In this document: piece by piece, positions 22,218-62,850 of the stretch
Numbering within the stretch: the first letter of the stretch is position 1
How the letters are laid out: the number at the start of each line of letters is the position of its first letter
From: Setoptus koraiensis
Taxonomy: Eukaryota > Animalia > Arthropoda
DNA: 64,000 nt
Assembly (NCBI GenBank): GCA_048013815.1
Contig: CM106586.1
Coordinates: 992,001-1,056,000, forward strand
Direction of reading: 5' to 3'
Notes under the pieces: generated by a model
What the model was told of the DNA's origin: nothing
The model's input: only the letters and a program-made list of their open reading frames with translations
The model's database searches: none
Made by a program: the position numbers and the translations under genes

Positions 22218-22246
22218 TTTTTAGCGCTTAATTTTAATTAAGTAGC
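22218..22246 (+). mobile_element. HINE-like element 5' terminus only, truncated by MITE-A
   Basis: TTTTTAGCGCTTAATTTTAATTAAGTAGC, the same as other 5' ends. Confidence 0.8.
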
Positions 22247-23115
22247 GGTTGTTCTAGCGATTAGGTCCCCAACCGGATCTTGATGAAACTACCGGTATAG
22301 GTCTATTCTGACCTAACTAAGACGAAAAAAGTGGTCCGGAAGCCAGGAAACTTCCGGTTCCGGTTTTACATAAAGTTAAAGCTAGAGCTCTGAAATTCAC
22401 TACAGGGACGTTTCAAGCTACGCTGAACACGATGACATAATTTTCAGCTCTGTGCGACTTCCGGTTTTCGAGATATAGAGATATTACTGGGGCTAGAATA
22501 CCGGAAGTGACCAAATTATTGCTTCGCTGCGCTCAGGGATGCACATGCGGTGTGTCTGAGAACTCGGCCTGCGGCCTCGTATTCTGGAGGCCGTCACATC
22601 TCCGTCGTCGCTACCGCGACGACTGCGTGCGACGGGAACCCTTCGGGTAGGGTTGATGAGCGCTTCGGGTATCGGGCTGCGCCCTCTACCCTCCGCTCAC
22701 ATGACTGCAATCCAAACACAGCTGCAGGCGGGAAGAGTGAACGAACCAACTAATTCGTTGATATTCAGGGTTAAAATGACCGAAACAGACATGGATACAG
22801 GGTGTTGCGCGCACGAGGCACAGGATGGGTCCGCTCATCGCGACCGCACAGGGCCCGGCCACACCCTTTTTTGCGTTAAACAGCTATATCTAGGTAACCG
22901 GAGGTGGCAGAAGATTAATTTTGATCTCATCGTGCTCCGCTAGGCGTCATCTATCCGATTATGAATTTTCAAAGCTCTGTCTCAATCTTAAGGTAACTCC
23001 GGAACCGGAAGTTTCCTGGCTTCCGGTCTACTCATTCCATGATATGGGGCCCCTACGGGACCCATGTGTGAAGTTTCATCGAAATCTGAGTGGGGACCTA
23101 ATCGCAAGAACACCC
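22247..23115 (+). mobile_element. MITE-A copy 1 (869 bp, GG...CC termini)
   Basis: Imperfect TIRs GGTTGTTCTAGCGATTAGGTCCCC / GGGGACCTAATCGCAAGAACACCC; near-identical to 48296-49164 and 59920-60788; no TSD at this copy. Confidence 0.92.
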
Positions 23116-23867
23116 TAATTGTCAAGCAAAAGCAAGAAATTGAAGACAGCAAGAAAAAAATAGAAGCTCTAGAGCTTAATCTTATGACTTGCACCGAGAA
23201 ACTTGGCACCTATGAGCAGAAGATCAGCGTTCTACAAGAAGGCCAAGCTGTAGCTCAACAGCAGCTTGATAAGCAAGCCAATATCATGAATCGGCTCGAA
23301 GAATTAGAGAGGAAATTGGTTATAGCCACTATTAAAAAAGAGACACAACGACCTCAAGAGGTATCCCAATTGATTCACGTAAACCTAAAGAAGGTGAAGG
23401 TAGAAGTCAAAGAGGAGCCAACTAGTCCACCAAGAAGCGCACCAGAACCTCCAGAGGTGCCAGACGGACCAGCAGTAGCCGCATCATGCGAGCCAGTCGA
23501 ACGACCGATCAGAATGGATGGAATACTGACCAATGTCAACAACAGAGCCTTGGGGCCCGATCATCCTACAGGTACTGATCTCTTAGAGATACAAATTTCG
23601 AGCAAAGGAAGAGAGGACATCAAGATGTCAGTCCACAGGAATACCAAGACGTCAGCCATTGGCAAAATATTCAAGGAACGACTGAACATACCTGATTATA
23701 ACTTCGATGTCCTATATATGGAGTCTGTTTCTCTCCGCACCTGTGAAACCCTATGGGCAGCCGGTCTACGACGACGGCAAACCAACTACTTGGTAGTTGT
23801 ACCTCGTGAGGTCAAGCCTGGCGAAACAATTAAAGCCAACCTGTTAGGCAAGGGGCCTCAGCAGTGA
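23116..23867 (+). CDS. 5'-truncated accessory ORF of an LTR retrotransposon (coiled coil, Pro-rich linker, ubiquitin/SUMO-like domain)
   Basis: Open frame ends 36 bp before an LTR, with a purine tract between; the first residues of the listed ORF come from MITE-A. Confidence 0.6.
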
Positions 23868-23902
23868 TTTACTCGAGGCGAGTAAAATCTGGAAGGGACG
23901 AT

Positions 23903-24148
23903 TGTGACGGTCGAATCCGCCCTGTCAAACTAACCCGCTAGGGGTCGCCCTCACGAGGGCTATATAAACCGACTCAAGTCACTGAGTCGGTATTCACTCA
24001 TGAGTCGCGTTCGCTCAGTTCATTCGCTCAATACTCACTATAATCAAGTACTCACTCACTGTACAAATATATGTATAATAAAGAAGCCGTGGCCTATCAA
24101 AAAGTAAACGCCCCCAGAATAGCCTACCAGACCGATACGATCGTTACA
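23903..24148 (+). mobile_element. 3' LTR (246 bp)
   Basis: Starts TGTGACGGTCG and ends CGATCGTTACA (imperfect IR, TG...CA); preceded by purine tract GGAAGGGA; contains TATATAAA and AATAAA. Confidence 0.8.
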
Positions 24149-25812
24149 ATGCACAAACCAAAAAGTGGGTGTTCCCACTACCCAACCAAGAGGAGATAAT
24201 GGAGGCGGGTAGTGGGGCACAGTTCTTCACGACACTCGACCTCAACTCAGGTTACTGGCAGATGGAGCTTGAGGAAGGGTCGAGACAGTATACAGCCTTC
24301 CAGACATGGGATAACCAATACGAATTTTTGAGGTTACCCTTTGGCCTATCGAATGCGGCCGCGTCTTTCAGCAAGATGATGGCGGCTGTAATGGCAGGAC
24401 TGGTAGGGAACGTCGTCCACGTGTACCTGGACGATCTTATAATAATGTCTAAATCATGGGATCAACACATAAAGAGTTTGACACAGGTCTTAAGCAGAAT
24501 AGAAGACGCTAATCTTACAATCAAGATAACCAAATGCACCTTTGCCAAAGAAGAAGCAGAAATCCTGGGTCACCTCCTAAGCAAGGAGGGAATTAGACCC
24601 CAACCAAGTAAAATCGCAGCCATAGAAGGATTAAGGCCACCACAAAACCTGAAAGAATTAAGACAATTCTTAGGATTCACGGGCTATTATCGAAAGTTCG
24701 TGCCCGCGTTTGCAGCGATATCAGGACCGTTAGCGGACTTGACCAAGAAGACAGCTGCATTCCGGTGGGGAGAAGAAGAGAATAACAGTTTTAATCGGCT
24801 TAAAGAAGCGGTGCTGAAAAGCAAGGCGATTGCCTACTTCAGGCAATACGGAGACGTTCTACTGGAGACAGATGCATCGAGAAAGGGGTTCGCCGGCATA
24901 CTCATGCAGATGCAAGACGGCGAGTGGCGGATCGCAGCGACGACAAGCAGGCGTCTGTCTCAGGGCGAATCGAATTTCAGCGTTACAGAGCTAGAAGGTG
25001 GCGCATTAGTCTACGCTTTACAAAAGTTTAAACCCTTTGTTTATGGCAGGCAGGTAGAGATAATCGTAGACCATTGTGCGCTGTGTTCTTTGGCCAGAGA
25101 TAAGCCGCTTGGCGGCAGACTGGCCAGGTGGGCCATAGCGCTTTCAGAGTTCAACCTTAAAATAACGTACCGATCGGGGCAGCTACATACGGACGTAGAT
25201 TGCCTTTCGAGACAACCTGTCGCCGACAAGGATGATAACCTCGATGAAAAAAGGTTTATATTCGCCTTAATCCCTTTAGTAGACTTTAGAAGCGGTTATG
25301 AGGACGATCAAGAGTGCGGTGAAGCACTAGATAGCATAGAAGGGGGGTTAGGAGACTTTAAGATGACAAACGGTTTCATATACAAGGGGACAAAACTTTT
25401 GGTCCCAGCAGAGTTCCGCAGAGAGATAGTAGAAAATGCTCACGCACAAGGTCACCCGGGCGAGAAGTAGACAACAGCGATAATACAACAGAAATACTTC
25501 TGGAAGAACCTAACAACAGACGTGCAACAACAGGTGAAGCAGTGTCAGGTGTGCCAGTTACACAAGATCCCAAGGGAGAAGCCGTCGGGGCTCATGAATT
25601 CATTTACACCTCACAAGCCTTGGGAGATGATTTGTCTGGACCATCTTGGTCCTTTCGACGAAACGCAGCAAGGGAATCGACACGTGCTGGTAGCCGTGGA
25701 TGCCTTTTCAAAATTTGTTATCGCAGGACCAACGAATTCAACATCGGCCAACGAGATAGCAAATTTTCTGACCGACAGGATTATAGCGGTACATGGAGTA
25801 CCAGCCATGATA
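24149..25812 (+). pseudogene. Ty3/gypsy pol fragment (RT, RNase H, integrase N-half) with in-frame TAG at 25468
   Basis: FTTLDLNSGYWQ, LPFGL, VYLDD, ETDAS, TDHC-like VDHCAL, GHPG..YFW..C..CQ, LDHLGP; truncated by a HINE 5' end. Confidence 0.95.
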
Positions 25813-26520
25813 TTTTTAGCGCTTAATTTTAATTAAGTAGCTATTGATGTGGGTCGGATGGATACGTTTATTCACGTGGGTAGAACAATTCAGTGCTTTT
25901 TTCAACTAGGAAAGAATAGCACGGTGAAAGCTGTACTGTGAGAAATAAACTAGATAAATTTAGAACACTCAAAGCCTACAATGTTGATTAGTTGAATTTA
26001 GCACATAGAATGCTATGCGCGTTCACTTACTAGACGCGATAAGCACGCTGAAAGCTGAGATGCTAACTAGATGAAATTAGCACAGCAGAAGGCTAGCTGT
26101 ATACAATTCGGATTCAGTGCACTGGAAGCTAGAGGTGTTGGAACTAGGAGATTGTAGAACAGTAGATACTATTCAGAATAACTACTGCTTCTCAGCACTG
26201 TCAATGCTGATGTGGCTGAAACTAGACGAGTGTAGCACGCTCAATACTGAGATGTAAAATAGATGAATTCAGCACAGCAGAAGGCTAGCTGTCTATAATT
26301 CTGATTCAGTGCACAGAAAGCTCGATGCATTGTAGCTAAGAGATTACAGCACAGCAGAAACCACCATGAGTAATTTAGTTAGACACACCAATTAGTCAAT
26401 GGCGCACACTTTGTTATGGTGCATCAAATTCGAATTTCGAAGTTCGAAATGTGACCATCGAACATTGACCACCGAACACTGGCCACCGAACATCGAACGA
26501 GCAGATGGAACTGTCATCAT
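25813..26520 (+). mobile_element. HINE-like element, 5' portion
   Basis: 5' terminus followed by the family-1 internal sequence also seen at 49473 and 53338. Confidence 0.8.
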
Positions 26521-26557
26521 CTCGCATACACACATTTCAAGTTTATCTTACACTTTA

Positions 26558-28541
26558 ACAAGTAATACTGATCAAATCAGTATTTCGAGCGCTTAATTTT
26601 TCGTGTGGACAAGTATTGTTGAAGGATTCAAAGGAGTTTATCACGACCTGTTAACCACCGAACTTCAAAATGTGACCATCGAACATAGACCATCGAACAA
26701 TGACCACCGAACATCGAACGAGCAGATGGAACTGTCATCAGAAATTCGAAAGAAATTGCATCAATTTGAATTTCGAAGTTCGAAATGTGACCATCGAACT
26801 TCGAATTGTGACCATCGAACTCTGTACAAGCACCTGGAACTCGTATCGGAAATTCGAATTTTCAATTTCGAAGTTCGAAATGTGACCATCGAACATTGAC
26901 CGCCGAACACTGACCACCGAACATCGAACGAGCAGATGGAACTGTCATCATCTCGCATACACACATTTCAAGTTTATCTTACACTTTAACAAGTAATACT
27001 GATCAAATCAGTATTTCGAGCGCTTAATTTTTCGTGTGGACAAGTATTGTTGAAGGATTCAAAGGAGTTTATGACAGCCTGTTAACCACCGAACTTCAAA
27101 ATGTGACCATCGAACATTGACCATCGAACACTGACCACAGAACATCGAACGTACAGATGGAACTGTCATCAGAAATTCGAATTTTCAATTTTCAATTTTC
27201 GAATTTCGAAGATCGAAATGTGACCATCAAACTCTGAACACCGAATTCTGACCATTGAACTCTGTACAAGCACCTGAAATTGGTATTGGAAAATCGAATT
27301 TTTCAATTTCGAAGTTCGAAATGTGACCATCGAACTTCGAATTGTGACCATCGAACTCTGTACAAGCACCTGGAACTCGTATCGGAAATTCGAATTTTTC
27401 AATTTCGAAGTTCGAAATGTGACCATCGAACTTCGAATTGTCACCATCGAACTCTGAACAAGCACTTGGAACTCCAAATTTCTTTCGCAGCATGATTCAC
27501 ATGTTGATTGCATGCGTACGGATTTTGGTAAGATTCTAATGGTCAGTTTCGCCTCAATGAGTAATTTAGTTAGTCACACAAATTAGTCAATGGCGCACAC
27601 TTAGTTATTGTGCATCAATTTCGGATATCGAAGTTCGAATTGTGACCATCGAAATCTGTACGATCACCTGGAACTCGTACCGAAAATTCGAATTTTCAAT
27701 TTCGAATTTCGAAGTTCGAAATGTGACCATCGAACTTCGAATTGTCACCAGCGAACTTCGAATTACGACCATCGAACTCTGTCAAATTCCCATAGGGTTA
27801 ACATTGTTAACGTTTAGATACTTTAACACAAAGAACAAAAAAAAATTTGTCAAAAACGTCAAAGTCAAATTCCCATAGAGTTAACATTGTTAACGTTTAG
27901 ATACTTTAACACAGAGAAGAAAAAAATTTTTGTCAAAATCGTCAAAGTCAAATTCCCATAGGGTTAACATTGTTAACGTTTAGATACTTTAACACAGGGA
28001 AGAACTGTAATCTCTTAGCTACAAAGCATCTAGCTTCCAGTGTACTAAATCAGAATTGTAGACAGCTAGCCTTCTGCTGTGCTGAATTCATCTATTTTAC
28101 ATCTCAGTATTGAGCGTGCTACACTCGTCTAGTTTCAGCCACATCAGCATTGACAGTGCTGAGAAGCAGTAGTTATTCTGAATAGTATCTACTGTTCTAC
28201 AATCTCCTAGTTCCAACACCTCTAGCTTCCAGTGCACTAAATCCGAATTGTATACAGCTAGCCTTCTGCTGTGCTAAATTCATCTAGTTAGCATCTCAGC
28301 TTTGAGCGTGCTAATCGCGTCTAGTAAGTGAACGCGCATAGCATTCTATGTGCTAAATTTAACTAATCAACATTGTAAGCTTTGAGTGTTCTAAATTTAT
28401 CTAGTTTATTTCTCACAGTACAGCTTTCACCGTGCTATTTTTTCCTAGTTGAAAAAAGCACTGATTTGTTCTACCCACGTGAATAAACGTATCTGCCAGA
28501 ACCACCCCAATAGCTACTTAATTAAAATTAAGCGCTAAAAA
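26558..28541 (-). mobile_element. HINE-like element with both termini (26989-28541); its 3' end is duplicated in a 431-bp tandem unit
   Basis: 5' end at 28517-28541, 3' ends with stem-loop at 26989-27032 and 26558-26601; internal 83-bp repeats and TTCGAA/GACCATCGAAC arrays in the same order as 49473-51170. Confidence 0.8.
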
Positions 28542-28543: not shown

Positions 28544-29544
28544 GGGTATTCTATCTAATAGCGCCACACTCCGATTTTCATGAAACTTCACAGATGGAGC
28601 CCACAGGGCCCCCTGACAATACTTTGAGTGGTCCGGAAGTGCGGAAACTTCCGGTTCCGGTTTCACAGAAAATTCAAGATACAAGCTTGAAACTCGGTGT
28701 ACAGCTGTATATCGACGTGCAAAACACAATGCTGCCGATTCCAGATCAACACCACTTCTGGTTCTTTGGATATTCACCCAAAACCGTGATTTTGGGCATG
28801 TCCGCGCTGAAGCGGGGTATTCTATGGAATAGCGTCACGCTCCGAATTTGATGAAACTTCACACCTGAGGCCCGAAGGACCTCCTGAGAACACTTATGAT
28901 GGTCCTGACGTGCGGAAACTTCCGGTTCCGGTTTTACATAAACTTGCAGATACAGCTTAGAAACTTAACATAGAGCCTGATATGACTGTGATGACCAGGT
29001 TGAAGTTATTTTGATATCTGTTGGACTTCCGGTTTTTGAGATAATGAGCGATCGTAATAGAATTCGGCAGTAGACAGTCTGTTGCACAACCTACTTTCGT
29101 GTATGGATTGCAGTCACGTGAGCGGAGGGTAGAGGGCGCAGCCCGATACCCGAAGCGCTCATCAACCCTACCCGAAGGGTTCCCGTCGCACGGAGTCGTC
29201 GCGGGAGCGACGACGGAGATGTGACGGCCTCCAGATTACGAGGCCGCAGGCCGAGTTCTCAGACCCATCACAAGCTGAGCGAAGCTGAGACCTATTTCTG
29301 CCATTCCTTGCTGTAATGGATGCGACCTTGATGAGGTACCAAAAATTACCCCGAAAAAATACCCGCAAATCCCCAAGCGGCTGTCGGGTGCCGTGAAACG
29401 CCCGCTGAGCGGTACCTCGGTTATCTCGGGAACGAAGAATTTCCGCACTTCCGGAATACCCATTGCGGTATCAAAGTACTATACCCTGCCCAAAAATACC
29501 CAAAATAACCCGAAAAAAGTGTGGCGCTATTAGATAGAATAACC
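28544..29544 (+). mobile_element. MITE-B (about 1.0 kb) with an internal second left end near 28812
   Basis: TIRs GGGTATTCTATCTAATAGCGCCACAC / GTGTGGCGCTATTAGATAGAATAACC; flanks TAAAAAGG and GAAAAAGG (7/8 TSD match); carries the 160-bp core at 29104-29263. Confidence 0.8.
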
Positions 29545-29629
29545 GAAAAAGGAAATGGAGCCGTGGAAGAATATAGAAAGAAGAAGGCTGTGAAGAATCA
29601 GCAAAACTACATGAGACGCCTCAAAGGAT

Positions 29630-30434
29630 CGTGATATTTGAACATGTTCCCACCTATCCGTTTTGATGATACTCTGTGTGTGTGTTGTGCATGTTGCTCG
29701 CAACATTTTGTGCAAGTATGATCAGAAATCAATTGGTCGTTTTCGAGACAGAAAGAAATTTTGGATGACGGATGTCATGTGAATATCGTGATATTTGAAC
29801 ATGTTCCCACCTATCCGTTTTGATGATACTCTGTGTGTGTGTTGTGCATGTTGCTCGCAACATTTTGTGCAAGTATGATCAGGAATCAATTGGTCGTTTT
29901 CGAGACAGAAAGAAATTTCGGATGACGGATGTCATGTATAGTCATCGATTTCTGAACATGTTCCCACCTATCCGTTTTGATGATACTCTGTGTGTGCAAG
30001 TATTACATTATGTGCGATTTTTGAAACTGTTCTCACCAGGATAAATTCTTGAAACTTTCTAGAGACAGCGAGCACTGTGCCATACACGATCTGTGCAAGT
30101 TTTATCAATTTTCTGTATCTAGTATTGGCGCTATAGGCAATTCTGGATCATGTTAGCTCATTCAATACATGTGATTTCTGATCACATGTGCCCATACATC
30201 ATGTGCAATTTTCGAAACTGTTCTGTTTCTAGTATTGGCGCTATAGGCCATTTTGTGGCACATGTTCTTCCACAGTATGTGCAATTTTCGAAACTGTTCT
30301 CACCAGGATAAATTCTTGAAAAACTTTCTAGAGACAGCTAGCACTTATCACTTCTTAATAAACTGTCCAAACCTCTAAGATTGTTCACTGGAAAAATTAA
30401 GCGCTCTTGTACTGGTATAATCAGTATAACTTGT
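29630..30434 (+). mobile_element. HINE-like family-3 3' portion containing a 157-bp tandem repeat (about 2.3 copies)
   Basis: AACATG anchors at 29641, 29798 and 29955; variant 3' end AAAAATTAAGCGCTCTTGTACTGGTATAATCAGTATAACTTGT at 30392-30434. Confidence 0.7.
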
Positions 30435-31592
30435 GTTTTCGAAAATCAGCCATAGTTTCCAAGTTTGTCAAGATAAAATTGCAAATTTTCGCACACTAGA
30501 TAGGCATAGATAGACTGTCCGACAGTGCGAATTCGGTGGCTTTCGAATGAATTTTTCAATCTTTTTTTCTTGGAAACTTTAACACAGGAATTGAGAGACT
30601 CAAATCTCCATAGGGTTAACATGTGTAATGTTTAGATATTTTAACACGGGATTTGAAAAACTCAAATCTCCATAGACTTAGCATGAGTAATGTTTAGATA
30701 TTTTAACATGGTAATCGAGAGACTCAAATCTCCATAAGGTTAACATGTGTAATTTTTAGATACTTTAACATCAATCAACCATTGATCGAATCCGACTAAG
30801 GTGCTGCGAAATTCCCCATCATTGAATTAACCTTCTTCGTGCTTAACCAACAAATGATCTCTGGTCTCACTCGAACCACGAATGTAAACAAGCTACAGAG
30901 CCAACTATCTACACACGAGACTTGTAATTATCAATTTGTATACAAGTAAACGAGCCAGGTATCTACACACTAAATGTAGAAATTCATCAATAAGTGAACA
31001 GCCTGCAGAGCCAGCTATCTACACACGAGACTGTGAAGCAACAACATGTAAACAAATTTTGAACAGCTAGAATGTGATGATGAGGTGGCAGACTTAGATT
31101 AAGATCATGTCTGTAGCTCACTGTGTATTAGGGAGCGGAGCTACTTAAGTCTCAATCAAGCTGCAGCTTACTGTGTGCTGAGGAGGTGGAGCGACTTAAG
31201 TCTCAATCAAGCTGTAGCTTACTGTGTGCTAGAGAGCGTAGCGACTTAAATCTCGATCAAGCTGAAGCTTACTGTGTGCTGAGGAGGTGGAGCGACTTAA
31301 GTCTGGAAATAGTGTGTAGCTTACTGTGTGCTGGGGAGGTGGAGCGACTTAAGTCTCAATCAAGCTGTAGCTTACTGTGTGCTGAGGAGGTGGAGCGACT
31401 TAAGTCTCAATCAAGCTGAAGGTACTGTGTGCTGAGGAGGTGAAGCGACTTAGGTCTCAATCAAGCTGAAGCTTTCTGTGTGCTGAGGAGGGGGCATGAC
31501 TCAAAATTGTAGGCTTGTGTGTGGATTGCCCCCTCCATTTAGGATCCAACATCACTACATCATTAGCGCTTAATTGAAATTAAGCGCTAAAA
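30435..31592 (-). mobile_element. HINE-like family-2 5' portion with 51-bp (about 7 copies) and 62-bp tandem repeats
   Basis: Palindromic 5' end TTAGCGCTTAATTGAAATTAAGCGCTAAAA at 31563-31592; internal sequence matches 57965-59239 and the reverse complement of 45583-45870. Confidence 0.8.
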
Positions 31593-32148
31593 GGAATTTA
31601 TGTCGATAACTGGCTTGTTATACCCTCCCAAACCTGTTATTACCAGATGGGGAACTTGGTTGAGGACCGCGGACTATTATTGCTCAAATCTTTCCTCTGT
31701 TAAACAATATCTGGCCTCACGAAATTCAAAGGATCCAACTAACTGCTTGAAAGTGTGTATCTCGGCCATCGAAGATGGTGATTTGGAGACGGAACTATAT
31801 AGTATCTCAGACTATCTATTCATAGCTGATGTAATTGAGCGACTTGAAACTCAGAATTTGACAATGGATGAAGTATTAAAGATTGTCAAAGACACAAAAA
31901 ACAAGATTGACCAGCTTAAACTCAAAGAACCTAGCCTTAAACCGGAGAAAGCATTGGACAAGAATCCTGACTTTCGAAATTTATGCAACCTTAGTAGTTT
32001 AGAAGAGAAAATACAGTTCAAATTCGCACCTTTGACATCATGTGATGTAGAGCGATCCTTCTCTAAGACCAAATCAATTTTTTCTGCCAATCGAAGTAAT
32101 TTTACTACTGACAATTTAAATATTTTATTCAATTTTTTAATTAGGTAA
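31593..32148 (+). pseudogene. DDE transposase C-terminal fragment, hAT-like
   Basis: PPKPVITRWGTWLRTADYY and FAPLTSCDVERSFSKTKSIFSANRSNFTTDNL (hAT-type dimerisation region); begins exactly at a HINE terminus. Confidence 0.75.
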
Positions 32149-32149: not shown

Positions 32150-32832
32150 TCATGTAAATATCGTGATATCTAAACATGTTCACACCTATCCGTTTTGATG
32201 ATACTCTGTTAGTGTGTTGTACATGTTACTCGCAACAATCTGTGCTAGTATGATCAGCCATCAATAGGCCGTCTTCGAAACAGAGAGAAATTTAGGATGA
32301 CGGATGTCATGTGAATATCGTGATTTCTGAACATGTTCCCACCTATCCGTTTTGATGATGCTGCGTGCATGTTGCTTGCAACATTCTGTCGTCTATCTTC
32401 GCCGCCTCTATTTCCGCCTTTTTCTGGTAGTTTTTTCAAAGTCATCATTTTTGGGCCGATATTTTGCTAGACTATATCCAACCTTAAGCCGCATACTGAT
32501 AAGATGATGAATAACCGCTGAAGATGTGCTAGAGATATAGCGTGAATTTAACCAGCCGATAGGTGTGATAGTGACCAAGTTGTTGATTAAGAGGTGTCGT
32601 GATGATGTTTTGTTGTTGACATGTGCCAAATTGTGATGATGTTTCAGTTGATTATATGTACCAGGTTGCCGATTGGTCATGAACCGTATGGAGTTTGGAA
32701 CTATGATTCCTGTGCTATAGTATCTAGACATTACACATGTTGGCTCTATGGAGATTTGGAATTTGATATCTGCCAATTATCAACTCACAAAACTGTGCGC
32801 TCTTGATACTGATAAGATCAGTATTACAAGTT
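32150..32832 (+). mobile_element. HINE-like family-3 3' portion (diverged)
   Basis: Two diverged copies of the 157-bp unit; variant 3' end AAAACTGTGCGCTCTTGATACTGATAAGATCAGTATTACAAGT at 32789-32832. Confidence 0.65.
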
Positions 32833-33739: not shown

Positions 33740-34205
33740 CAAATCCGCAGCTTCCAGATACATCTCTAAGGTGCGTGATTGTCTCACCCAGAGTTTTGTT
33801 CCGTCTCATCTCGGTTTCTGATCTCTCGACCGTGAGACGGCTGTCAGACGTTATATTAGACCTCTTGCTCGCAAGTTGTTCATTTTTGACAAGCCTAACA
33901 ACACCGTTCTGGTCATGGATGGCACTTATCTGTTTCTTCAGAAAAGTAACCATTTCGCTTGTAGAAGGGCAAATTATTGTACATACAAGAATAGACACCT
34001 CGTCAAACCATTCACTATTTGCACGAGTGATGGTTTTATTCTAGCAATGATGGGCCCCTACATGGCCAAGAATAATGACGGCTCTATTCTCATAGAGATC
34101 CTTGACAGTGGAAGCGATCTAAGGAATTGGATCCACGAGGATGATTACTTCGTACTGGATAGAGGTTTTAGGGATGCTCTATCGCTGCTTGAACATTTGA
34201 ATATC
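33740..34205 (+). pseudogene. PIF/Harbinger-ISL2EU-type DDE transposase fragment (DDE_Tnp_4-like) with in-frame TGA at 33819
   Basis: FVPSHLG, VMDGTYLFLQKS, LVKPF..DGFI..GPY..NND, FVLDRGFRD; ends exactly at a MITE terminus. Confidence 0.8.
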
Positions 34206-51272: not shown

Positions 51273-52206
51273 GGTTATAGTAGCGAACAGCGACCACGCC
51301 CAATTTGGGTATTTTGGGTATTTCTGGGTAGGATATTGTACCCTGATACCCGAACAGGTATTCCGGAAGTGCGGAAATTCTTCGTTACCGAGATACCCGA
51401 GGTACCGCATACTGGGTATTTTAGGGTATAAGAGGGCATGTTGAGGGTAAAGTCGGCCGTACCTATCCGCTTGGACATCCGGTCAGATGCTGAGGTCCTC
51501 GCACCGGAGGAAAATCATTCCTAGAAGCCACAGGAAGCGAATGAAAGCGGTCAAACTGAAGAGGCGTGGCCGATGCGCGCGGCGCGGAGTAAAACTGCCC
51601 GCAGTTAGTGAGACCACCCACCGAGTCCTAGCACTACTGAGGATGATGAAAGTTGAATAAAGGCTTAGCCCTGACTTTTTCGACGCTTTCGACCTCGCGG
51701 TCCGCGCAGACTCGGAACTCAGCTCGTACTGACCCCTATTCCGATCTTCACCGACTCGGCCTTCGGCCTCGCGAGCTTGCCTCGCTTCGGGTTGAGGGCT
51801 TCGCCCTCAACCCTCGCTCGTACCGACAACCCCGGCCTTCGGCCGAGTAATTGTCACACACCCGAACACCAGAAACAATGCGAATGCGTGCCAGGCTGAG
51901 TGCGGCTCGTGAGACGTCAGATGTGACTCGAATTGCGTGACCGGAAGTTGGTCCAACAGTGAATGGTGGACATCTCCTGAGTGGATGATTGTAAGGGTGA
52001 GATTCTAACTGCATGTTAACGGTGGTATCTGGACCTAACCGAAAATACCTAAATTCTAGTCTGAGGCACTCCTGAGGCCCGGAAAATGCTTTTCCCCGTA
52101 TCTCCGGAAGTAGAAATTTCCGCACTTCCGGACCTTCAAAAACGTTCTTTGGGGCCGCTTCGCGGCCCTTGTGTGGAGTGTGAAGGAAATCGGGCTTGGT
52201 CGTTGT
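51273..52206 (+). mobile_element. MITE-C copy with intact left TIR and truncated right TIR
   Basis: GGTTATAGTAGCGAACAGCGACCACGCCC matches the reverse complement of the right end at 47699-47727. Confidence 0.85.
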
Positions 52207-52489: not shown

Positions 52490-53337
52490 AAGTGGGCACC
52501 CACCAGATTAGGGTATTTTGGGTATTTTTGGGTAGCGTATAGTACCCTGATACCCGAATAGGTATTTATAATATGTAGAAATGTCAGGTTTCTGAGATAA
52601 CCGAGGTACCGCACAGTGGGCGTTTTGAGATACCCGATGACCGCTAGCGGTCTCAGCGGCGTACCCGAAGAAATTTCGGGTATCATTAAGGTACACCCGG
52701 GTACACTTGTTTTTCTGGAGGTATTCCGGAAGTGAAGAAGTGACCTTAAATTGAGATAACTGGGGTCGGGTATCACGTGTTTTCCGGCATGACTTGTAAT
52801 CATGTCCGCACGTGTGCGGCTCACTCGTCGCGGGTAGCTTGAGGTACCCCGAGTCACCCACCGACACCCCGCGCGCGCGAAAATCATTATTCCACTCGGG
52901 AGCGTACCTGTGATGAGTCTAAGAACTCGGCCTGCGGCCTCGTATTTTGGAGGCCGTCACATCTCCGTCGTCGCTACCGCGACGACTGCGTGCGACAGGA
53001 ACCATTCGGGTAGGGTTGATGAGCGCTTCGGGTTTCGGGCTTCGCCCTCAGCCCTCCGCTCACATGACTGCAAACCATAGACGAGAGTAAGAGACAAGAA
53101 GAAAAGTTGAAAGCCTCGGAACATGATTCAAGCACAGAACTAGCGCTGTGCCTTCTTGTGTGGTGAAATATCTGAGCCTCTAGGGCTCACGTGTTTCCTC
53201 GTGCGCACGAACATTCCGTCCCGGGCGGAATACCTGGGTGGTTTTTCCTAAATATCTCTGGAACCAGAGGTCGCACAGACATTAGATGAACCACATTGTA
53301 CTGAAAATGACTGTTGCCTGCTGCATATCAAGTTTTA
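52490..53337 (+). mobile_element. GG-MITE internal fragment with the 160-bp core (52918-53077)
   Basis: GGGTATTTTGGGTATTT arm and core; truncated by a HINE 5' end. Confidence 0.7.
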
Positions 53338-54000
53338 TTAGCGCTTAATTTTAATTAAGTAGCTATTGGTGTGGTTCGGATGGATACGTTTATTCACGTG
53401 GGTAGAACAAATCAGTGCTTTTTTCAACTAGGAAAAAATAGCACGGTGAAAGCTGTACTATGAGAAATAAACTAGATAAATTTAGAACACTCAAAGCTTA
53501 CAATGTTGATTAGTTAAATTTAGCACACAGAATGCTATGCGCGCGAAACACTAACAAGACGCGATTAGCACGCTCAATACCGAGATGCTATCTAGATGAA
53601 TCTAGCACAGCATAAGGCTAGCTGTATACAATTCGGGTTTAGTGCACTGGAAGCTAGAGGGGTTGGAACTAGGAGATTGTAGAACAGTAGATACTATTCA
53701 GAATAACTACTGCTTCTCAGCACTGTCAATGCTGATGTGGCTGAAACTAGACGAGTGTAGCACGCTCAATGCTGAGATGCTAACTAGATGAATCTAGCAC
53801 AGCATAAGGCTAGCTGTATACAATTCGGATTTAGTGCACTGGAAGCTAGAGGTGTTGGAACTAGGAGATTGTAGTACAGTAGAGGCTACTCAGAATAGCT
53901 TTTGCTTCTTAGCACTGTCAATGCTGATGTGGCTGAAACTAGACGAGAGTAACACGTTCAATACAGTGATGCTAACTAGATGAATTTAGCACAAGCATAA
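53338..54000 (+). mobile_element. HINE-like 5' portion with an internal duplication
   Basis: 5' terminus at 53338-53359; family-1 sequence with a repeated block at about 53580-53960. Confidence 0.8.
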
Positions 54001-55134: not shown

Positions 55135-56246
55135 CTAGGATAGATTCCTCAGCTCCGCAAGAGACTCGTATCTTGCAGAGCATGTGATTATTAACTCATC
55201 ATCGATGTAGGGATATCCAGTGAGGTTGGTGAACAGATAGGGGCACGGATCGATAAAAATAAACTTGACGGTCATATCTTGATGTCCTTCTATACGAACC
55301 ACATTGGTTGTTCTCCATATTATCGAATCTTCGTGTTGAAATTGACCGCAAGTGCAGATGATGAAACTAACAAATGTGAATACGGCCACAATTTTGGCTG
55401 GTGCAAGACCAATTAGGCGAATCATGTTGTGATGTTTATTCGGAGGCAAGGATTTTGTAAGTACGTCCTCCATCTGTAGATTGGTTTCTGTGTATTTTAT
55501 CGAGAATTTGCCTTGTTTGTATTGTTCTTGGATTGTCTTTAACTCGATGTCAAGGTGCTTTGTTCTCTGGTTGTATTCACTGCTTTCTATTAATCTTAGG
55601 GCTGCTTGATTGTCGAGACAGAGAGTACTAGATGTGGATATGTCGAGTTCGGTTAGAAGACTGTTTAACCATTTCAATTCCTTTATTGCTAGGTTGGCTG
55701 CAATGAATTCTGATTCAGTCGTGGAGGATGCTATCAGAGATTGTTGTTTACATCGATATATGATAGGTCCACCACACATATCCAATAATATACCACTCAT
55801 AGAGCGTCTAGTGACAGGGTCGCCCCCCCAATCACTATCGCTGTAGCAAGATATCGTCAAATCATCATCATTTCTTCTAAACATAATGCCATGTGAGCTA
55901 GTCCCTTTTAGATATCTGAGAATCATTTTTGCCGAGGTCCAATGTTTCTCTGCGGGAGATGTGTTGAACCTCGCTAGAGTATTAACCACGAAACTGATAT
56001 CTGGCCTTGTAAGACATGAGATGTAATTTAGTGCGCCGATTAATTGTCGATACGGTGCATTAACTCTCTGATCAGTCGATAATACTGTTGAGAGATGGTT
56101 ACTGTCTATCAGTAGAGTATGGTATGCTTTGCACTCGCCCATCTGATACTTTGATATTGTTTGTTTAATGTAATTTTCTTGATGTAGTAAAATGCCGTCT
56201 GATTCATGCTTGATCTCAAAGCCAACAAAGTAATTACTATCTACCA
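55135..56246 (-). pseudogene. Ty1/copia RT C-terminus and RNase H with in-frame env-like extension
   Basis: YRQLIGALNY..TRPDI, YSDSDWGGD, SSTTESEF, DNQAA, RTKHLDI, DVLTK; reading continues 89 aa beyond the usual end of pol. Confidence 0.9.
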
Positions 56247-57715
56247 TTTTAGCGCTTAATTTTAATTAAGCTGCTATTGGGATGGGTCTGGGTGCTACGT
56301 TCATTCACGTGACTATGTAATCCTATGGAGGGTGGACTTAGTCAAATTTGTGAGAATCCTGCTAGACATTACACATGTATTCCTATGCAGATTCGACTTG
56401 GATTATTATCGCTTCACTCGAAAATATTTCGTATGCGATCTTATGTAGATTTGGCTAGGTCGAATTTGTGAGGAGTTCGGTGGTGACAAATCGAACTTGA
56501 AAATTGAAAATTGGAATTTCTAATGGGAGTTTCAGCTGCTAGTTCGAAGTTAGTGGTTCAGTGTTCTTAGTTTCATGGTCAGAGTTCGGTGGTCACGTTC
56601 CGAACTTCGAAATTCGAAATTGAAAATTCGATTTTCTGATGATAGTTTCAGCTGCTTCGTCGAAGTTCGATGGTCAGAGTTCCGTGGTCAGAGTTCGATG
56701 GTCGCAATTCGAACTTTAAAATTCGAATTTCGAAATTGAAAATTCGGATTCCTAATGATAGTTTCATCTGTTCGTTCGATGTTCGATGGTCAAAGTTCGA
56801 TGGTCGCAGTTCGAACTCCGAACATGGAAATTCGAAATTGAAAATTCGGATTTCTGATGATAGTTTCAGCTGCTTCGTCGAAGTTCGATGGTTAGTGTTC
56901 GATGGTCGGAGTTCGATGGTCACATTTCGAAGTTCGGTGGTAACAATTCGAAATTGAAAATTCGATTTTCTGAAATGAGTTTCAGCTGCTCCGTCAATGT
57001 TCGTGGTTCAGTGTCCGAATTTCGATGGTTACAATTCGAAGTTCGGTGGTCACATTTCGAACTTCGAAATTTCGAAATTGAAATTTCGTATTTCTGTTGA
57101 CAGTTTCATCTGCTCGTTCGATGTTCGACGGTCAGTGTTCGATGGTCAATGTTGAATGGTCACAATTCGAACTTCGAAATTCGAAATCGATGCACTATAA
57201 CCAAGTGTGCGCCGTTGACTAATTGGTGTGTCTAACTAAATTACTCATTGCGGCGAAACTGACTAGTAGAATCTTATTAAATTTCGTACGCAAGCAATTC
57301 GAAGTTAAATGGTCAGAGTTCGATGGTCACATTTCGAAGTTCGGTGGTAACAATTCGAAATTCGAAATTGAAAATTCGATTTTCTGAAATGAGTTTCAGC
57401 TGCTCCGTCAATGTTCGTGGTTCAGTGTCCGAATTTCGATGGTTACAATTCGAAGTTCGGTGGTCACATTTCGAACTTCGAAATTTCGAAATTGAAATTT
57501 CGTATTTCTGTTGACAGTTTCATCTGCTCGTTCGATGTTCGACGGTCAGTGTTCGATGGTCAATGTTGAATGGTCACATTTCGAACTTCGAAATTCGAAA
57601 TCGATGCACTATAACCAAGTGTGCGCCGTTGACTAATTGGTGTGTCTAACTAAATTACTCATTGCGGCGAAACTGACTAGTAGAATCTTATTAAATTTCG
57701 TACGCAAGCAATCGA
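56247..57715 (+). mobile_element. HINE-like element with TTCGAA arrays and a tandem duplication of about 410 bp (56909-57715)
   Basis: 5' terminus at 56247-56270; its likely 3' tip is at 59235-59278, beyond a nested family-2 element. Confidence 0.7.
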
Positions 57716-57719
57716 CATC

Positions 57720-59239
57720 GAGATTTGAGTTTCTCTAATCCCGTGTTAAAGTATCTAAACATTACACATGTTAATCTTATGGAGATTTGAGTCTCTCGAT
57801 TACCATGTTAAAGTATCTAAACATTACACATGTTAACTCTATGGAGATTTGAGTCTCTCGATTCCCGTGTTAAAGTATCTAAACATTACACATGTTAACC
57901 CTATGGAGATTTGAGTCTCTCAATTCCTGTGTTAAAGTATCATGGTGTCACATACTCGCATCGTGTCAAATCTCCATAGACTTAGCATGTGTAATGTTTA
58001 GATACTTTAACATGGTAATCGAAAGACTCAAATCCCTATAGAGTTAACATGTGTAATGTTTAGATACTTTAACACGGTAGTCGAGAGACTAAAATCTCCA
58101 TAAGGTTAGTATGTGTAATGTTTAGATAGTTTAACATCAATCAACCATCGATCAAATTGGACTTAGGTGCTGCGAAATTCCTCACCATTGAAACAACCTT
58201 CTTCGTGCTCAACGAACAAATGATCTCTAGTCTCATTGTAGAACTCGAACCACGAATGTAAACAAGCTACAGAGCCAGCTATCTACATACGAAACTGAGA
58301 AGCAACAACACGTAAACAAATTTTGAAGAGCTAGAATGTGATGATGAGGTGGCAGACGTAGATTTCGATCATATCTGTAGCTAACTATGTATTAGAGGGC
58401 GGAGCGACTTAAGTCTCAATCAATCTGTAGCTCAGTGTGTGCTAGGAAAAGGAAAGACTTAAGTCTCAAATTAGTGTGTAGCTTACTGTGTGCTGAGGAG
58501 GTGGAGCGACTTAAGTCTTAATCAAGCTGTAGCTTACTGTGTGCTGAGGAGGTGGAGCGACTTAAGTCTCAAACTAGTGTGTAGCCTACTGTGTGCTGAG
58601 GAGGTGGAGCGACTTAAGTCTCAATCAAGCTGTAGCTTACTGTGTGCTGAGGAGGTGGAGCGACTCAATCAAGCTGTAGCCTACTGTGTGCTGAGGAAGT
58701 GGAGCGACTCAATCAAGCTGTAGCCTACTGTGTGCTGAGGAGTTGGAGCGACTCAATCAAGCTGTAGCTTACTGTGTGCTGGGGAGGTGGAGCGACTTAA
58801 GTCTCGATCAAGCTGTAGCTTACTGTGTGCTGAGGAGGTGGAGCGACTTAAGTCTAAATCAAGCTGTAGCTTACTGTGTGCTGAAGAAGCAGAGAGACTC
58901 AATCAAGCTGCAGCTTACTGTGTGCTGAGGAGGTGGAGCGACTTAAGTCTCTATCGAGCTGTAGCTTACTGTGTGCTGAGGAGGTGGAGCGACTTAAGTC
59001 TCGATCAAGCTGTAGCTTACTGTGTTCTGAGGAGGTGGAGCGACTTAAGTCTCAATCAAGCTGTAGCTTACTGTGTGCTGAGGAGGTGGAGCGACTTAAG
59101 TCTCATTCAGGCTGTAGCTTTCTGTGTGCTAATGAGGGGGCGTGACTCAAAATTGTAGGCTTGTGTGTGGATTGCCACCTCCATTTAGGATCCAACATCA
59201 CTACATCATTAGCGCTTAATTAAAATTAAGCGCTAAAAA
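57720..59239 (-). mobile_element. HINE-like family-2 element with about 15 copies of a 51/44-bp repeat and inverted 62-bp arrays
   Basis: Palindromic 5' end at 59209-59239, fused to a 3' terminus at 59235-59278. Confidence 0.8.
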
Positions 59240-59278
59240 TTAAGCGCTCGAGATACTGATCGAATCAGTATCACTTGT

Positions 59279-62200
59279 TTTTCGTAATTGTTGAGTCTCT
59301 GGCTTATCTTGTGATTTTGCACGATCATATGATCTCTGCTTATCAGAATGCTTGAACTTTTCATTATTTTTGTGCTCTGACTAATGGCATCGCTAGAGAT
59401 AACATCGTCCGAGCAAATGCCAGCAGCAAATCTATTCACGATGCCGAGCATGACAATAAATCCTACAATATCAACGACATTGTGAAAGTCTACTTTCCAC
59501 CCAAATCAATTAGGGTCTCTCAATTCCTGTGTTAAAGGATCTAAACATTACACATGTTAACCTTATGGAGATTTGAGTTTCTCAATTCCCGTGTTAAAGT
59601 ATCCAAGAAAAAAAGATTGAAAAATTCATTCGAAAGCCACCAAATTCGCACTGTCGAACATTCTATCTATGGCTATCTAGTGTGCGGAAATTGGCAATTT
59701 TATCTCGACAAAATTGGAAACTATGGCTGATTTTCGAAAATAAAATAGTGCATGAAAATGCGGATGCATCATAGCGATCAAGTATCGTTCAAATATAGAT
59801 GCGAGTATGTGATAACATGTCGGAGTTGAACATCTATGCCTGTCGAATCAGAGTAGCCGAAAAGATGACATAATAAATACAAGTTCTTCAAATTCCTATC
59901 ACAACGTGATACACATGTTGGTTGTTCTAGCGATTAGGTCCCCAACCGGATCTTGATAAAACTTCCGGTATAGGTCTATTCTGACCTAACTAAGACGAAA
60001 AAAGTGAACCGGAAGCCAGGAAACTTCCGGTTCCGGTTTTACATAAAGTTAAAGCTATAGCTCTGAAATTCACTACAGAGACGTTTCAAGCTACGCTGAA
60101 CACGATGACATAATTTTCAGCTCTGTGCGACTTCCGGTTTTCGAGATATAGAGATATTACTGGGGTTAGAATACCGGAAGTGACCAAATTATTGCTTCGC
60201 TGCGCTCAGGGATGCACATGCGGTGTGTCTGAGAACTCGGCCTGCGGCCTCGTATTCTGGAGGCCGTCACATCTCCGTCGTCGCGGGAGCGACGACTGCG
60301 TGCGACGGGAACCCTTCGGGTAGGGTTGATGAGCGCTTCGGGTATCGGGCTGCGCCCTCTACCCTCCGCTCACATGACTGCAATCCAAACACAGCTGCAG
60401 GCGGGAAGAGTGAACGAACCAACTAATTCGTTGATATTCAGGGTTAAAATGACCGAAACAGACATGGATACAGGGTGTTGCGCGCACGAGGCACAGGATG
60501 GGTCCGCTCATCGCGACCGCACAGGGCCCGGCCACACCCTTTTTCGCGTTAAACAGCTATATCTAGGTAACCGGAAGTGGCAGAAGATTAATTTTGATTT
60601 CATCGTGCTCCGGTAGGCGTCATCTATCCGATTATGAATTTTCAAAGCTCTATCTCAATCTTTTGGTAACTCCGGAACCGGAAGTTTCCTGGCTTCCGGT
60701 CTACTCATTCCATGATATGGGGCCCCTACGGGACCCATGTGTGAAGTTTCATCGAAATCTGAGTGGGGACCTAATCGCAAGAACACCCCACATGTTGACC
60801 GACTACTCTGATCTGACAGGCATAGATGTTCATCTCTGACATGGTGTCACAAACTCGCATCCATATTCCAACGATACTCGTCTATCAAAAAAATTAAGCG
60901 CTCGAGATACTGACGGAATCAGTATTACTTGTATGTATCAGACCAGTTTGATTCTGGAGACCCGACGTTGGCTAGTAGTTCGCTTGCTTCGCTGTCTCCA
61001 CCGTATGCCTCTCTGTAATCTGCTAGCGGCACCAGCATGAAACAAAACTTGTTATCGTCCAGACTGTCCTTGTAGCCGCTCTGTGGAAGGCGCGACAGGC
61101 AGTCTGCCTCGCAGTGCTGCTGTCCTGATTGGTATTTTATATTAAGCTTGTACTCCGAGAGTGCGATTGCCCATCTGGCGAGTTTGCCGCTTTGGGTGTT
61201 CTAAATTTATCCAATTTATTTCGCATAGTATAGCTTTCACCGTGCTATTCTTTTCTAGTTGAAAACTGCACTGATTTGTTCTACTCACGTGAATAAACGT
61301 ATCCATCATCACCACACGAATAGCAACTTAATTAAAATTAAGCGCTAAAAATCTGATGGATCAATCCGATTTTGTATTGATTATAGACGACTTAACTCTG
61401 TAACAAAAAAATGGGCCTTTCCTCTACCCAATCAAGAGGACATACTCAGTTCCTGCGGAGGAGCACGTTACATAACGACATTAGACATGAACAGTGGGTT
61501 CTGGCAGATACCCATGGATGAGAAGAGCACAGAATTGACAGCGTTTTCAACTACAGACGCCCAATGTGAATATTTGTACATGCCTTTCGGCCTGGGTATT
61601 TTGGGTATTTCTGGGTAGTATATTGTACCCTGATACCCGAACAGGTATTCCGGAAGTGCGGAAATGCTTCGTTACCGAGATACCCGAGGTACCGCATACT
61701 GGGTATTTTAAGATATAAGAGGGCATATTGAGGGTAAAGTCGGCCGTACCTATCCGCTCGGACATCCGGTCAGATGCTGAGGTCCTCGCACCGAAGGAAA
61801 ATCATTCCTAGAAGCCACAGGAAGCGAATGAAAGCGGTCAAACTGAAGAGGCGTGGCCAATGCGCGCGGCGCGGAGTAAAACTGCCCGCAGTTAGTGAGA
61901 CCACCCACCGAGTCCGAGCACTACTGAAGATGATGAAAGTTGAATGAAGGCTTAGCCCTGACTTTTTCGACGCTTTCGACCTCGCGGACCGCGCAGACTC
62001 GGAACTCCGCTCGTACTGACCCCTATTTCGATCTTTACCGACTCGGCCATCGGCCTCGCAAGCTTGCCTCGCTTCGGGTTCAGGGCTCCGCCCTCAACCC
62101 TCGCTCGAACCGACAACCCTGGCCTTCGGCCGAGTAATTGTCACGCACCCGAACACCAGAAACAATGCGAATGCGTGCCAGGCTGAGTGCGGCTCGTGAG

Positions 62201-62850
62201 ACGTCAGATGTGACTCGAACTGCGTGACCGGAAGTTGGTCCAACAGTGAATGGTGGATATCTCCTGAGTGGATGATTGTAAACGGTGGTATCTGGACCTA
62301 TTCGAAAATACCTAAATTTCCAGTCTGAGGCACTCCTGGAAAATGCTTTTCCCCGTATCTCCGGAAGTAGATATTTCCGCACTTCCGGACCTTCAAAAAC
62401 GTTCTTTTGGGCCGCTTCGCGGCCCTTGTGTGGAGTTTGAAGGAAATCGGGCTTGGTTGTTGTTCGCTACTACACCCCAATAAGCAAGTTAAGAGAACCG
62501 AAAAACGTTGACGAGATAAGAAAAGTTTTGGGCCTTATAGGCTATTATAGGAAGTTTATTCATCGGTTCGCCGAACTAGCGGCGCCACTAACCGATCTCA
62601 CAAGAGATGGAGAGAGATTCACGTGGGAACAAACCCTTGAAAATAGCTTTACCGCACTTAAAAAAGCTCTGCTAGAAAGTAGAGCAATCTCATTTTATAT
62701 CAGGAACAAACCGTTGATGATCAAAACCGACGCGTCGCGATTGGGTGCGGCAGGCCTCTTAATGCAACTACAAGATGGTCAGTGGCGAATCATCAACGCC
62801 ACTAGCCGACGATTATCTAGCTCCCCTGGTTGTTCTGTAAGATTTTTCTC
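59279..62850 (+). repeat. Segmental duplication of 45343-48101 with an added MITE-A insertion
   Basis: Same ordered mosaic (copia gag, HINE 3' part, HINE 5' part, gypsy RT, MITE-C, RNase H, MITE tip) with scattered substitutions. Confidence 0.95.
59920..60788 (+). mobile_element. MITE-A copy 3 (869 bp) with 8-bp TSD CACATGTT
   Basis: TSD at 59912-59919 and 60789-60796; the empty site is present in the paralogous copy near 46039. Confidence 0.97.

Follow-up and report, generated by a model that had tools for sequence, protein, structure and literature searches.

HINEs, Helentron-type elements first defined in the mite Metaseiulus occidentalis, are recognised by subterminal inverted repeats (subTIRs) 2–4 nt from the 5′ tip and ~38–60 nt from the 3′ tip, by a short 3′ palindrome, by a centre of tandem repeats or a microsatellite, and by insertion, confirmed through empty sites, into T-rich targets without a target-site duplication (TSD) (Thomas et al. 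2014, PMC4067079). In Drosophila, exchanged TSDs reveal rearrangements that arose by ectopic recombination between copies of the element Galileo (PMC2775673), and in maize, alternative transposition of Ac/Ds (of the reversed-ends or sister-chromatid type) places breakpoints exactly at element tips (PMC3744419, PMC8225341). Transposon nests or graveyards, such as heterochromatin and piRNA-cluster-like regions, contain old relics that younger elements have interrupted; strands are mixed, and small deletions and local duplications occur.

The window analysed here is a 64,000-nucleotide stretch of the genome of Setoptus koraiensis, which has two chromosomes and is, at ~48 Mb, very small. Genomic coordinates refer to chromosome C2 (24,533,333 bp); all others are positions in the window. 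In a 40-kb part of it, old and broken jumping genes have piled up in an ordinary manner and been cut by younger ones. This part shares all the features of transposon nests listed above, but unlike them it forms an island between ordinary genes. Relics of gypsy, copia, Harbinger-like and Mutator-like elements stop exactly at the ends of HINEs or of MITEs with 8-bp TSDs. The first-pass annotation took them for pieces cut at the termini of two non-autonomous families, never resumed, and collected by these families. We consider it probable that the region is a transposon nest of a familiar type, with rearrangements mediated by transposons, and has no special fragment-collecting device.

Relics and the HINEs that bound them

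Most junction coordinates first proposed were correct to within a few bases. The element ends are sharp, as many independent genomic copies begin or end at the same base (22247/23115, 25813, 28541, 34206, 39875, 43403, 46601, 48296/49164, 49473 and 56247), and at least six families are involved instead of two. The old relics have no second DNA copy in the genome, and genome-unique relics also flank two apparently complete HINEs (49473–51170 and 56247–59278) and an element called E, a point against the explanation that we prefer.

The first gypsy relic, of pol (gypsy-1, 24151–25812, + strand) carries the Pfam domains of reverse transcriptase (RT), RNase H and integrase, the last reaching rve position 68 of 102. 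The relic lies between an LTR end to its left and a HINE 5′ end to its right, and is indeed cut within the integrase core, at 25812. The second (gypsy-2, 39876–42171, +), which has small repeats inside, holds an RT domain (39997–40404) and the first half of an integrase, to 42171. The second half, from 43384 to 43067, lies in an inverted 1.2-kb block (42172–43402, −) and picks up at the same residue where the forward half stops, with no residue lost. The sequence said never to resume at 43402 is therefore an integrase merely split by a local inversion. The third relic (gypsy-3, residues on the gypsy-1 scale) consists of an RVT_1 segment beginning exactly at an element end (46602–46842, +, residues 19–89), an RT/RNase H segment in the same strand and frame (47728–48077, +, residues 181–293), and a pol piece in inverted orientation (46184–46438, −, residues 343–427). 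RNase H is interrupted near 48077, as had been described. The first two segments are not distinct fragments, since both come from one gypsy copy, whose pol continues in frame past a MITE-D copy, minus a single ~300-bp deletion. The inverted piece, and with it a head-to-head HINE pair, is explained by no single simple event, which counts against the explanation that we prefer.

Among the other relics, a Harbinger-like transposase fragment, unique in the genome (33822–34205, +), matches DDE_Tnp_4 positions 1–85 of 158 and terminates, as first seen, at an element end. Copia is represented by a 288-bp RT relic (35182–35469, −, RVT_2 positions 2–96, in agreement with the first reading) with element E to its left and, to its right, a short HINE-like element (35470–36074); by a gag relic with a zinc knuckle and Pol_BBD (44810–45573, −), preceded by a 44-bp HINE 3′ tip (44766–44809); and by a genome-unique C-terminal part of RT with RNase H (55138–56246, −), which ends at a HINE 5′ end, again as proposed. 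A 308-bp relic unique in the genome (49165–49472, −) has exactly the bounds first given, but its Mutator-like hit is weak (E 6e-5, below the Pfam cut-off). The site 31593, previously called hAT-like, marks where a 532-bp repeat (31589–32120, +; 97% copy at C2:12089902–12090433) naturally begins; no hAT domain was found in it, and the HINE to its left ends 40 bp before its true 3′ end. Finally, 59279–62850 (+) is a 98.5% local duplicate of 45344–48101, so that the copia gag at 59279, counted as a fragment of its own, duplicates the one at 45344.

The HINEs resemble the published ones in structure. The palindromic subTIR AGCGCTTAATT... occurs twice, within a few bases of the 5′ tip and once more ~40 bp before the 3′ tip (5′ TTTTTAGCGCTTAATT..., 3′ ...AAAATTAAGCGCT ~40 nt from the tip; more than ten 5′ ends and eight 3′ ends were checked), a hairpin with a 9-bp stem (GATACTGAT-AGA-ATCAGTATC) is found 6 nt short of the 3′ tip, and the centres contain tandem repeats (units of 14/102/116, 62 and 51 bp). 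All 5′ junctions are within T-runs and no target duplication was seen; a single paralogous empty site, which covers the 5′ end only, agrees with the junction at 22218. The sequence family, in contrast, differs from those described. One copy of 1698 bp is complete (49473–51170, +), with both subTIRs, central repeats and hairpin, and a 3-kb variant (56247–59278, +) appears so, with its 5′ end, repeat arrays (14/116-bp, 62-bp, 51-bp) and canonical 3′ end. HINE-b (26366–28541, −, 5′ end at 28541) consists of a complete copy (26989–28541) and, after it, a tandem repeat (431 bp) of the 3′ part of that copy.

The others are partial. Against the 1698-bp reference copy, HINE-a (25813–26350, +) retains positions 1–538, the copy at 39502–39875 (−, 5′ end at 39875) positions 1–372, that at 46439–46601 (−) positions 1–163, and that at 22218–22246 (+) the first 29 bp. 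The copy at 53334–53993 (+) is a 5′ part with an internal duplication, and a 3′ part from a ~610-bp family (45574–46182, +) ends in the canonical 3′ hairpin. Because the truncated copies break within the HINE body (at positions 29, 163, 372 and 538), ordinary deletion accounts for the missing half at these places.

These data bear on the idea that HINEs and MITEs pick up and move pieces of 0.2–1.7 kb, by rolling-circle read-through or one-ended transposition, and so build a cassette library. Many relics are flanked by element ends on both sides, for example the 288-bp copia and 308-bp Mutator-like ones, and rolling-circle elements can repeat their own 3′ end in tandem, as HINE-b does. Most relics, however, lie upstream of HINE 5′ ends, out of reach for read-through capture, and several fragments continue or have their other half elsewhere. 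Gene capture predicts the same junction at several loci; when the relic-to-element junctions were searched genome-wide, none recurred outside the single local 3-kb duplication. With at least six families involved as well, we regard transduction into a fragment library as highly improbable.

MITEs, split duplications and a divided LTR element

The MITE TIRs begin GG(G/T)TGTTCT / GGGTATTCT, and clean insertions are flanked by 8-bp TSDs (CACATGTT, GATGCGGC, TCTTATTA, AGAGTCGG, GCGCTCAC and TAAAAAGG/GAAAAAGG). This length agrees with the 8–9 bp of Merlin-type MITEs and would fit hAT equally well. MITE-C (~1 kb, 28544–29544, +) is a simple insertion at the tip of HINE-b, with the TSD TAAAAAGG / GAAAAAGG. 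At 34206–35181 (+), two elements abut: a 278-bp MITE piece (34206–34483) and the 697-bp element E (34485–35181), whose right end is a MITE-type TIR. One MITE copy (38177–39403, −) holds an assembly gap (38596–39095), the flanks of which match successive parts of the family; no reading frames cross this gap. MITE-F (866 bp, 43403–44268, +) has a sharp left end and a right end without TIR. MITE-D copy 1 (46843–47727, +) lacks its first 35 bp and keeps its right end intact, and copy 2 (51273–52206, +) has an intact left TIR and lacks its last 14 bp.

MITE-A is present in three copies, the third within the local duplicate. As first reported, copies 1 and 2 have no TSD, whereas copy 3 (59920–60788) is a clean insertion with CACATGTT. 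Copy 1 (869 bp, TIRs of ~230 bp, 22247–23115, +, ends defined from many copies) interrupts the 29-bp HINE 5′ end. Ahead of this lies an orphan 215-bp low-copy repeat (22003–22217), at the contig start directly after a gap (21503–22002) and 99% identical to C2:383257–383474 (−), the empty site for the HINE at 22218. The flanks of copy 1 are TAAGTAGC and TAATTGTC. To its right, what was annotated as a gypsy ORF at 23116 is the tail of an LTR retroelement, without any Pfam domain: 787 bp of internal sequence and a 248-bp 3′ LTR (23116–24150, +; LTR TGT..ACA, 23903–24150), an intact 7.1-kb relative being found at C2:22470057–22477201. Its missing 5′ 6 kb are at C2:403320–409401, 605 kb upstream. 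They end in ...TAATTGTC, the 8 bp with which 23116 begins, beside a MITE-A (C2:409402–410270) 100% identical to copy 1. A partner for the left flank of copy 1 was sought and not found, apart from a similar insertion of another subfamily.

Copy 2 (48296–49164, +) is flanked by AAAAATTG and TTCCTTTG. Its right flank has an exact 27-nt partner, inverted and 17 kb downstream (C2:1058004–1058030, −), the reversed control pattern giving no match; copy 2 thus has TTCCTTTG in common with a copy in inverted orientation. A search allowing up to 2 mismatches did not find the other predicted pair; the second copy lies beyond the sequence read. This, like the absent left-flank partner of copy 1, counts against the explanation that we prefer. 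The claim that interrupted sequences never resume fails for at least four cases (23116, 49165, 47728 and 43402), although the exact stops at element ends stand.

Both MITE-A cases recall Galileo: copy 2 shares its 8-bp duplication with an inverted copy, and copy 1 shares one with a distant copy, the flanks being halves of one LTR element. They depart from the Galileo expectation (PMC2775673) in that one of the two predicted pairs was found per case, and the direct orientation in the case of copy 1 means that more than one event is needed. The breakpoints exactly at element tips recall alternative transposition of Ac/Ds. So does a pair of different copies within the neighbouring 200 kb, ~80% alike, whose inner ends have the 8-bp duplication AAACAATG in common, although such pairings could be due to chance or assembly. 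Unlike Ac/Ds, the mite locus has no sign of an active transposase.

Flank exchange or assembly mosaic

The swapped flanks between identical copies are either a real exchange or assembly errors or haplotype chimeras. In the latter case chimeric joins, made through near-identical 0.9-kb repeats in a pooled, polymorphic population, would account for the MITE copies without TSD and the divided LTR element, and perhaps for the 98.5% duplicate. The published S. koraiensis assembly is based on a pool of over 100,000 wild mites and was built with PacBio CLR reads, Flye 2.6, purge_dups and 3D-DNA, at 1.13% heterozygosity. As the window probably comes from such pooled mites and noisy long reads, mis-assembly, a caveat already raised in the first-pass annotation, is still a live rival, and several observations favour it: gaps of 500 N interrupt the transposon-rich DNA about once per 30 kb, copy 1 is just 245 bp from a gap, behind the orphan repeat, the two MITE-A copies with the split duplication are 100% identical when other copies differ by 1–2%, and the local duplicates diverge about as much as the heterozygosity level. 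Matching duplications were absent in 6 of the 12 MITE-A-like copies examined, a proportion high for real biology, which could reflect assembly error. On the other hand, CLR reads normally span 0.9-kb repeats, both supposedly chimeric contigs extend kilobases past the MITE, and similar flank pairings occur among copies merely ~80% alike. Nor can the small deletion, the inversion in unique gypsy sequence or the clean insertions be repeat-induced joins. Overall we hold a mosaic origin to be rather unlikely, and infer that the flank exchanges are true recombination or aberrant transposition.

Origin and significance of the patchwork

We favour the view that the region is a transposon graveyard with later ordinary rearrangements. 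Old autonomous elements (three gypsy, copia, Harbinger-like and Mutator-like) would survive as short genome-unique relics, next to one younger LTR element, and younger non-autonomous elements would have inserted into them repeatedly: HINEs, which leave no target duplication, at T-runs, and GG-ended MITEs of at least five families, which make 8-bp duplications. Any insertion of this kind leaves a junction exactly at an element end. That far halves are missing or displaced would be due to secondary events of an ordinary sort, each seen here at least once, namely small deletions spanning a junction or within a HINE body, the 1.2-kb inversion, the 3-kb local duplication, and probably flank exchange between near-identical MITE-A copies, visible as split target duplications. 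Two mechanisms first suggested fit these data: ectopic recombination, as the missing partner flanks of the two MITE-A copies without TSD lie next to another MITE-A copy, and adjacent deletion, as ~300 bp were lost at one junction. A dedicated mechanism that samples or carries fragments is unnecessary.

Whatever its origin, the locus might be a working source of small RNAs of the piRNA/siRNA type, kept for its fragments on both strands. Fragments of at least 10 families do lie on both strands within 40 kb, between ordinary genes; yet the same families are dense across the entire first megabase of the chromosome, meaning that the island is not singular, and no known RNA family or tRNA is present in it. 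We find this role improbable. It is likewise improbable that the locus is a genuine hotspot, where aberrant transposition, as opposed to plain recombination, lets 8-bp-TSD MITEs and HINEs repeatedly rearrange the DNA next to their tips and the two-strand patchwork serves as a small-RNA source policing transposons in one of the smallest arthropod genomes.

This analysis is of use mainly as a resource and as a warning: cuts lying exactly at element ends are what insertion normally leaves behind, and "missing halves" can be traced, by way of target-site duplications, to further copies of the element in question. Flank exchanges that are not true would mark mis-joins in a published chromosome-level assembly; true ones would be a record of inversions and translocations mediated by MITEs in an eriophyoid mite whose genome is tiny.

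Elements and relics

Two kinds of young element, MITEs and HINEs (non-autonomous Helentron-type elements), supply the sharp ends found in the region; bare coordinates are window positions, and those prefixed C1: or C2: are chromosome positions. MITE-A measures 869 bp and has ∼230-bp TIRs, and at least 11 full copies with sharp ends and 98% identity are present in the genome. Clean insertions of MITE-A and related families are flanked by 8-bp duplications, and their TIRs start with GG. The other sharp-ended families are MITE-C (28544-29544), MITE-D (46843-47727 and 51273-52206), MITE-F (43403-44268), element E (34485-35181) and a 278-bp piece starting at 34206. The HINEs begin with TTTTTAGCGCTTAATTTTAATTAAG and finish with AAAATTAAGCGCTCGAGATACTGATAGAATCAGTATCACTTGT, the 3′ end containing a subterminal inverted repeat and a hairpin, while their centres are occupied by tandem repeats. 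Thomas et al. described the same anatomy in mite HINEs. The HINE 5′ junction at 22218 is backed by a paralogous empty site. One HINE, at 26366-28541 on the minus strand, has its own 3′ part repeated in tandem (431 bp; 26429-27335), its 3′ end being present twice (26558 and 26989). tRNA and Rfam scans gave no matches. A 157-bp satellite forms short arrays at 29628-29997 and 32150-32367, and a ∼4-kb array at C2:391676-395859 that adjoins a gap at C2:391 kb. At the start of the contig, a (GGTT)n-like tract (22003-22042) matches a ∼14-kb satellite-like array at C2:415000-429000.

Embedded among these elements are coding relics recognised by Pfam: gypsy reverse transcriptase (RT), RNase H and integrase (24082-25833), DDE_Tnp_4 (33822-34220), RVT_2 (35170-35529, minus strand), RVT_1 (39817-40350 and 46599-46865), RNase H (47691-48137), a copia gag zinc knuckle with Pol_BBD (44873-45445, minus strand), a weak Mutator match (49150-49407, minus strand) and a copia C-terminal part (55138-56265, minus strand). 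The three copia relics do not overlap each other on a reference copia, yet their arrangement is not collinear with that of a single element. Apart from one LTR element, the relics have no second DNA copy genome-wide, and are therefore old. A further relic-to-MITE junction was seen outside the window, at C1:21538622-21542589, where a gypsy pol starts exactly at a MITE end and is still open (846 codons).

Junctions between relics and elements

The first-pass annotation had described at least 12 coding fragments, between 22218 and 62850, as ending at HINE or MITE termini and never resuming beyond them. The termini were borne out in part: at 34205, 35182 and 56246 unique relics are cut exactly at an element end, and 25812, 39876 and 46602 are genuine junctions made by HINE 5′ insertion. 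The hAT-like fragment proposed at 31593 was not recovered, as no hAT domain was found there by Pfam. On the left of this junction a HINE halts at its palindromic subterminal repeat, 40 bp before the real 3′ end; on the right lies a 532-bp repeat, the other copy of which begins at the same base, so that the junction is the natural start of this repeat. Finally, 59279 is the left edge of a local duplicate 98.5% identical to 45344-48101. A third MITE-A copy (59920-60788) is a clean later insertion in this duplicate, with the duplication CACATGTT.

The HINEs themselves are broken within their bodies, at position 538 (the one at 25812), 372 (39876), 163 (46602) and 29 (22218), so removal of the other half did not happen at an element tip. 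For gypsy-1, the pol relic at 24151-25812, a tblastn search with a related intact pol did not find the remainder of the integrase in the window, and it was also absent from the flank past the HINE pair and MITE-C.

Two other gypsy relics do resume. On the gypsy-1 pol scale, 46632-46844 of gypsy-3 (46184-48077) corresponds to residues 19-89 and 47730-48068 to residues 181-293, both in the same strand and frame. The MITE-D copy lying between them has kept its right TIR and lost its first 35 bp; a single ∼300-bp deletion across the left MITE-D junction accounts for this. The arrangement is plain nesting, with gypsy-3 resuming beyond MITE-D. A third piece (residues 343-427) is inverted, at 46184-46438, and the whole arrangement recurs in the local duplicate. 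The integrase of gypsy-2 (39876-43402), compared with the intact pol on C1, extends on the plus strand as far as residue 516, at 42171, and restarts at residue 516 on the minus strand, from 43384 down to 43067, with Pfam support. The break at 43402 is a clean 1.2-kb inversion, with 18 bp between its right end and the left tip of MITE-F.

Between these relics, the gap at 38596-39095 is flanked on the left by MITE positions 637 to 303 in minus orientation (38177-38507), and on the right by the remaining end of the same kind of MITE (39097-39403). The two flanks do not overlap each other, and other genomic copies carry both parts contiguously, meaning that this is an assembly gap inside one MITE copy. 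A circularly permuted MITE-F around gypsy-2 was considered and rejected, since 39097-39403 is the end of a copy running into the gap. No reading frame crosses the gap, and none of the 12 claimed junctions depends on it.

A split LTR element and probable flank exchanges

The fragment starting at 23116, next to MITE-A copy 1 (22247-23115), consists of the final 787 bp and the 248-bp 3′ LTR (TGT...ACA) of an LTR element (23116-24150). An intact relative of 7.1 kb lies at C2:22470057-22477201. It runs on upstream of the breakpoint, through CTCAACGATT and then TAATTGTC, so the reading of 23116 as the place where the element naturally ends was rejected. The same upstream stretch, with TAATTGTC at its end, was found at C2:409394-409401, immediately before a MITE-A identical to copy 1 (869/869), and C2:403320-405068 and C2:407925-409401 match the 5′ LTR and internal region of the relative at 97.5-99.6%. 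One LTR element with a single MITE-A insertion, bearing the 8-bp duplication TAATTGTC, is therefore divided between two sites that lie 605 kb from each other and have the same orientation. In the 3′ internal part of the LTR element, an open frame of 274 codons (23043-23864) is without Pfam match; its conservation is 98% in the intact relative and 50% in a second element.

On its left, copy 1 has only 245 bp of orphan repeat and 29 bp of HINE, adjoining a gap. As continuation of this HINE past copy 1, the sole candidate was a two-mismatch match at C2:964141(-), which has the appearance of a MITE from another subfamily that inserted independently at this HINE site. That MITE (C2:964141-964168(-), 28 kb before the window) sits at TAAGT[A/T]GC, HINE bases 22-29, the same position as copy 1; these bases may be a preferred MITE target site.

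MITE-A copy 2 (48296-49164) is flanked by AAAAATTG and TTCCTTTG. The combination of TTCCTTTG with the MITE-A left end has a single exact match in the genome, C2:1058004-1058030(-), 17 kb downstream of copy 2 and 2 kb past the window end; the reversed control pattern had no match in the genome. This pairing shows exchanged duplications, the signature by which inversions are attributed to ectopic recombination among transposon copies (PMC2775673). The second duplication pair expected for copy 2 was searched and not found, and no recombinant pattern was visible within the four MITE-A copies compared. With this partner, the upstream LTR half and the two resuming gypsy relics, the claim that fragments never resume falls.

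As a baseline, 6 of 12 MITE-A-like copies in the window and 200 kb of neighbouring sequence had matching duplications, the other 6 having none. The local comparison covered C2:280001-480000 and six small loci. Within C2:309335-343023, 8-bp pairings also occur between different copies: AAACAATG is both the right flank at 312099 and the left flank at 340823, and the left flank at 309335 is the reverse complement of that at 311229 (AAATTTTG). These copies share only ∼80% identity. If real, these pairings would favour aberrant transposition as in Ac/Ds (PMC3744419, PMC8225341); they could also be chance or assembly effects. In the same neighbourhood, C2:367772-372139 and C2:396780-401418 form a segmental duplication, ∼29 kb apart with a gap between, both copies sharing two MITE insertions and their duplications, AGAGTCGG and GCGCTCAC.

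Assembly and probable origin of the region

For the flank exchanges, the main rival explanation is that a pooled population was assembled chimerically. In the published assembly of Setoptus koraiensis (two chromosomes, N50 of 24.53 Mb), more than 100,000 wild mites were pooled, and PacBio CLR reads, Flye 2.6, purge_dups and 3D-DNA were used. The genome used here is in two pieces (48.76 Mb), C2 being 24,533,333 bp long and the window C2:992001-1056000. Gaps of 500 N, two in the window and seven in the neighbouring 200 kb, fit that pipeline.

The proposal that the young elements transduce cassettes of foreign sequence found no backing: with queries covering the region, no match spans any relic-to-element junction outside the local duplicate. 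Rolling-circle read-through, moreover, cannot capture most of the relics, because they lie upstream of HINE 5′ ends. The initial observation was partly right, and its best reading is an ordinary transposon nest, reworked secondarily through deletions, one inversion, one duplication and the exchange of flanks among copies of MITEs.
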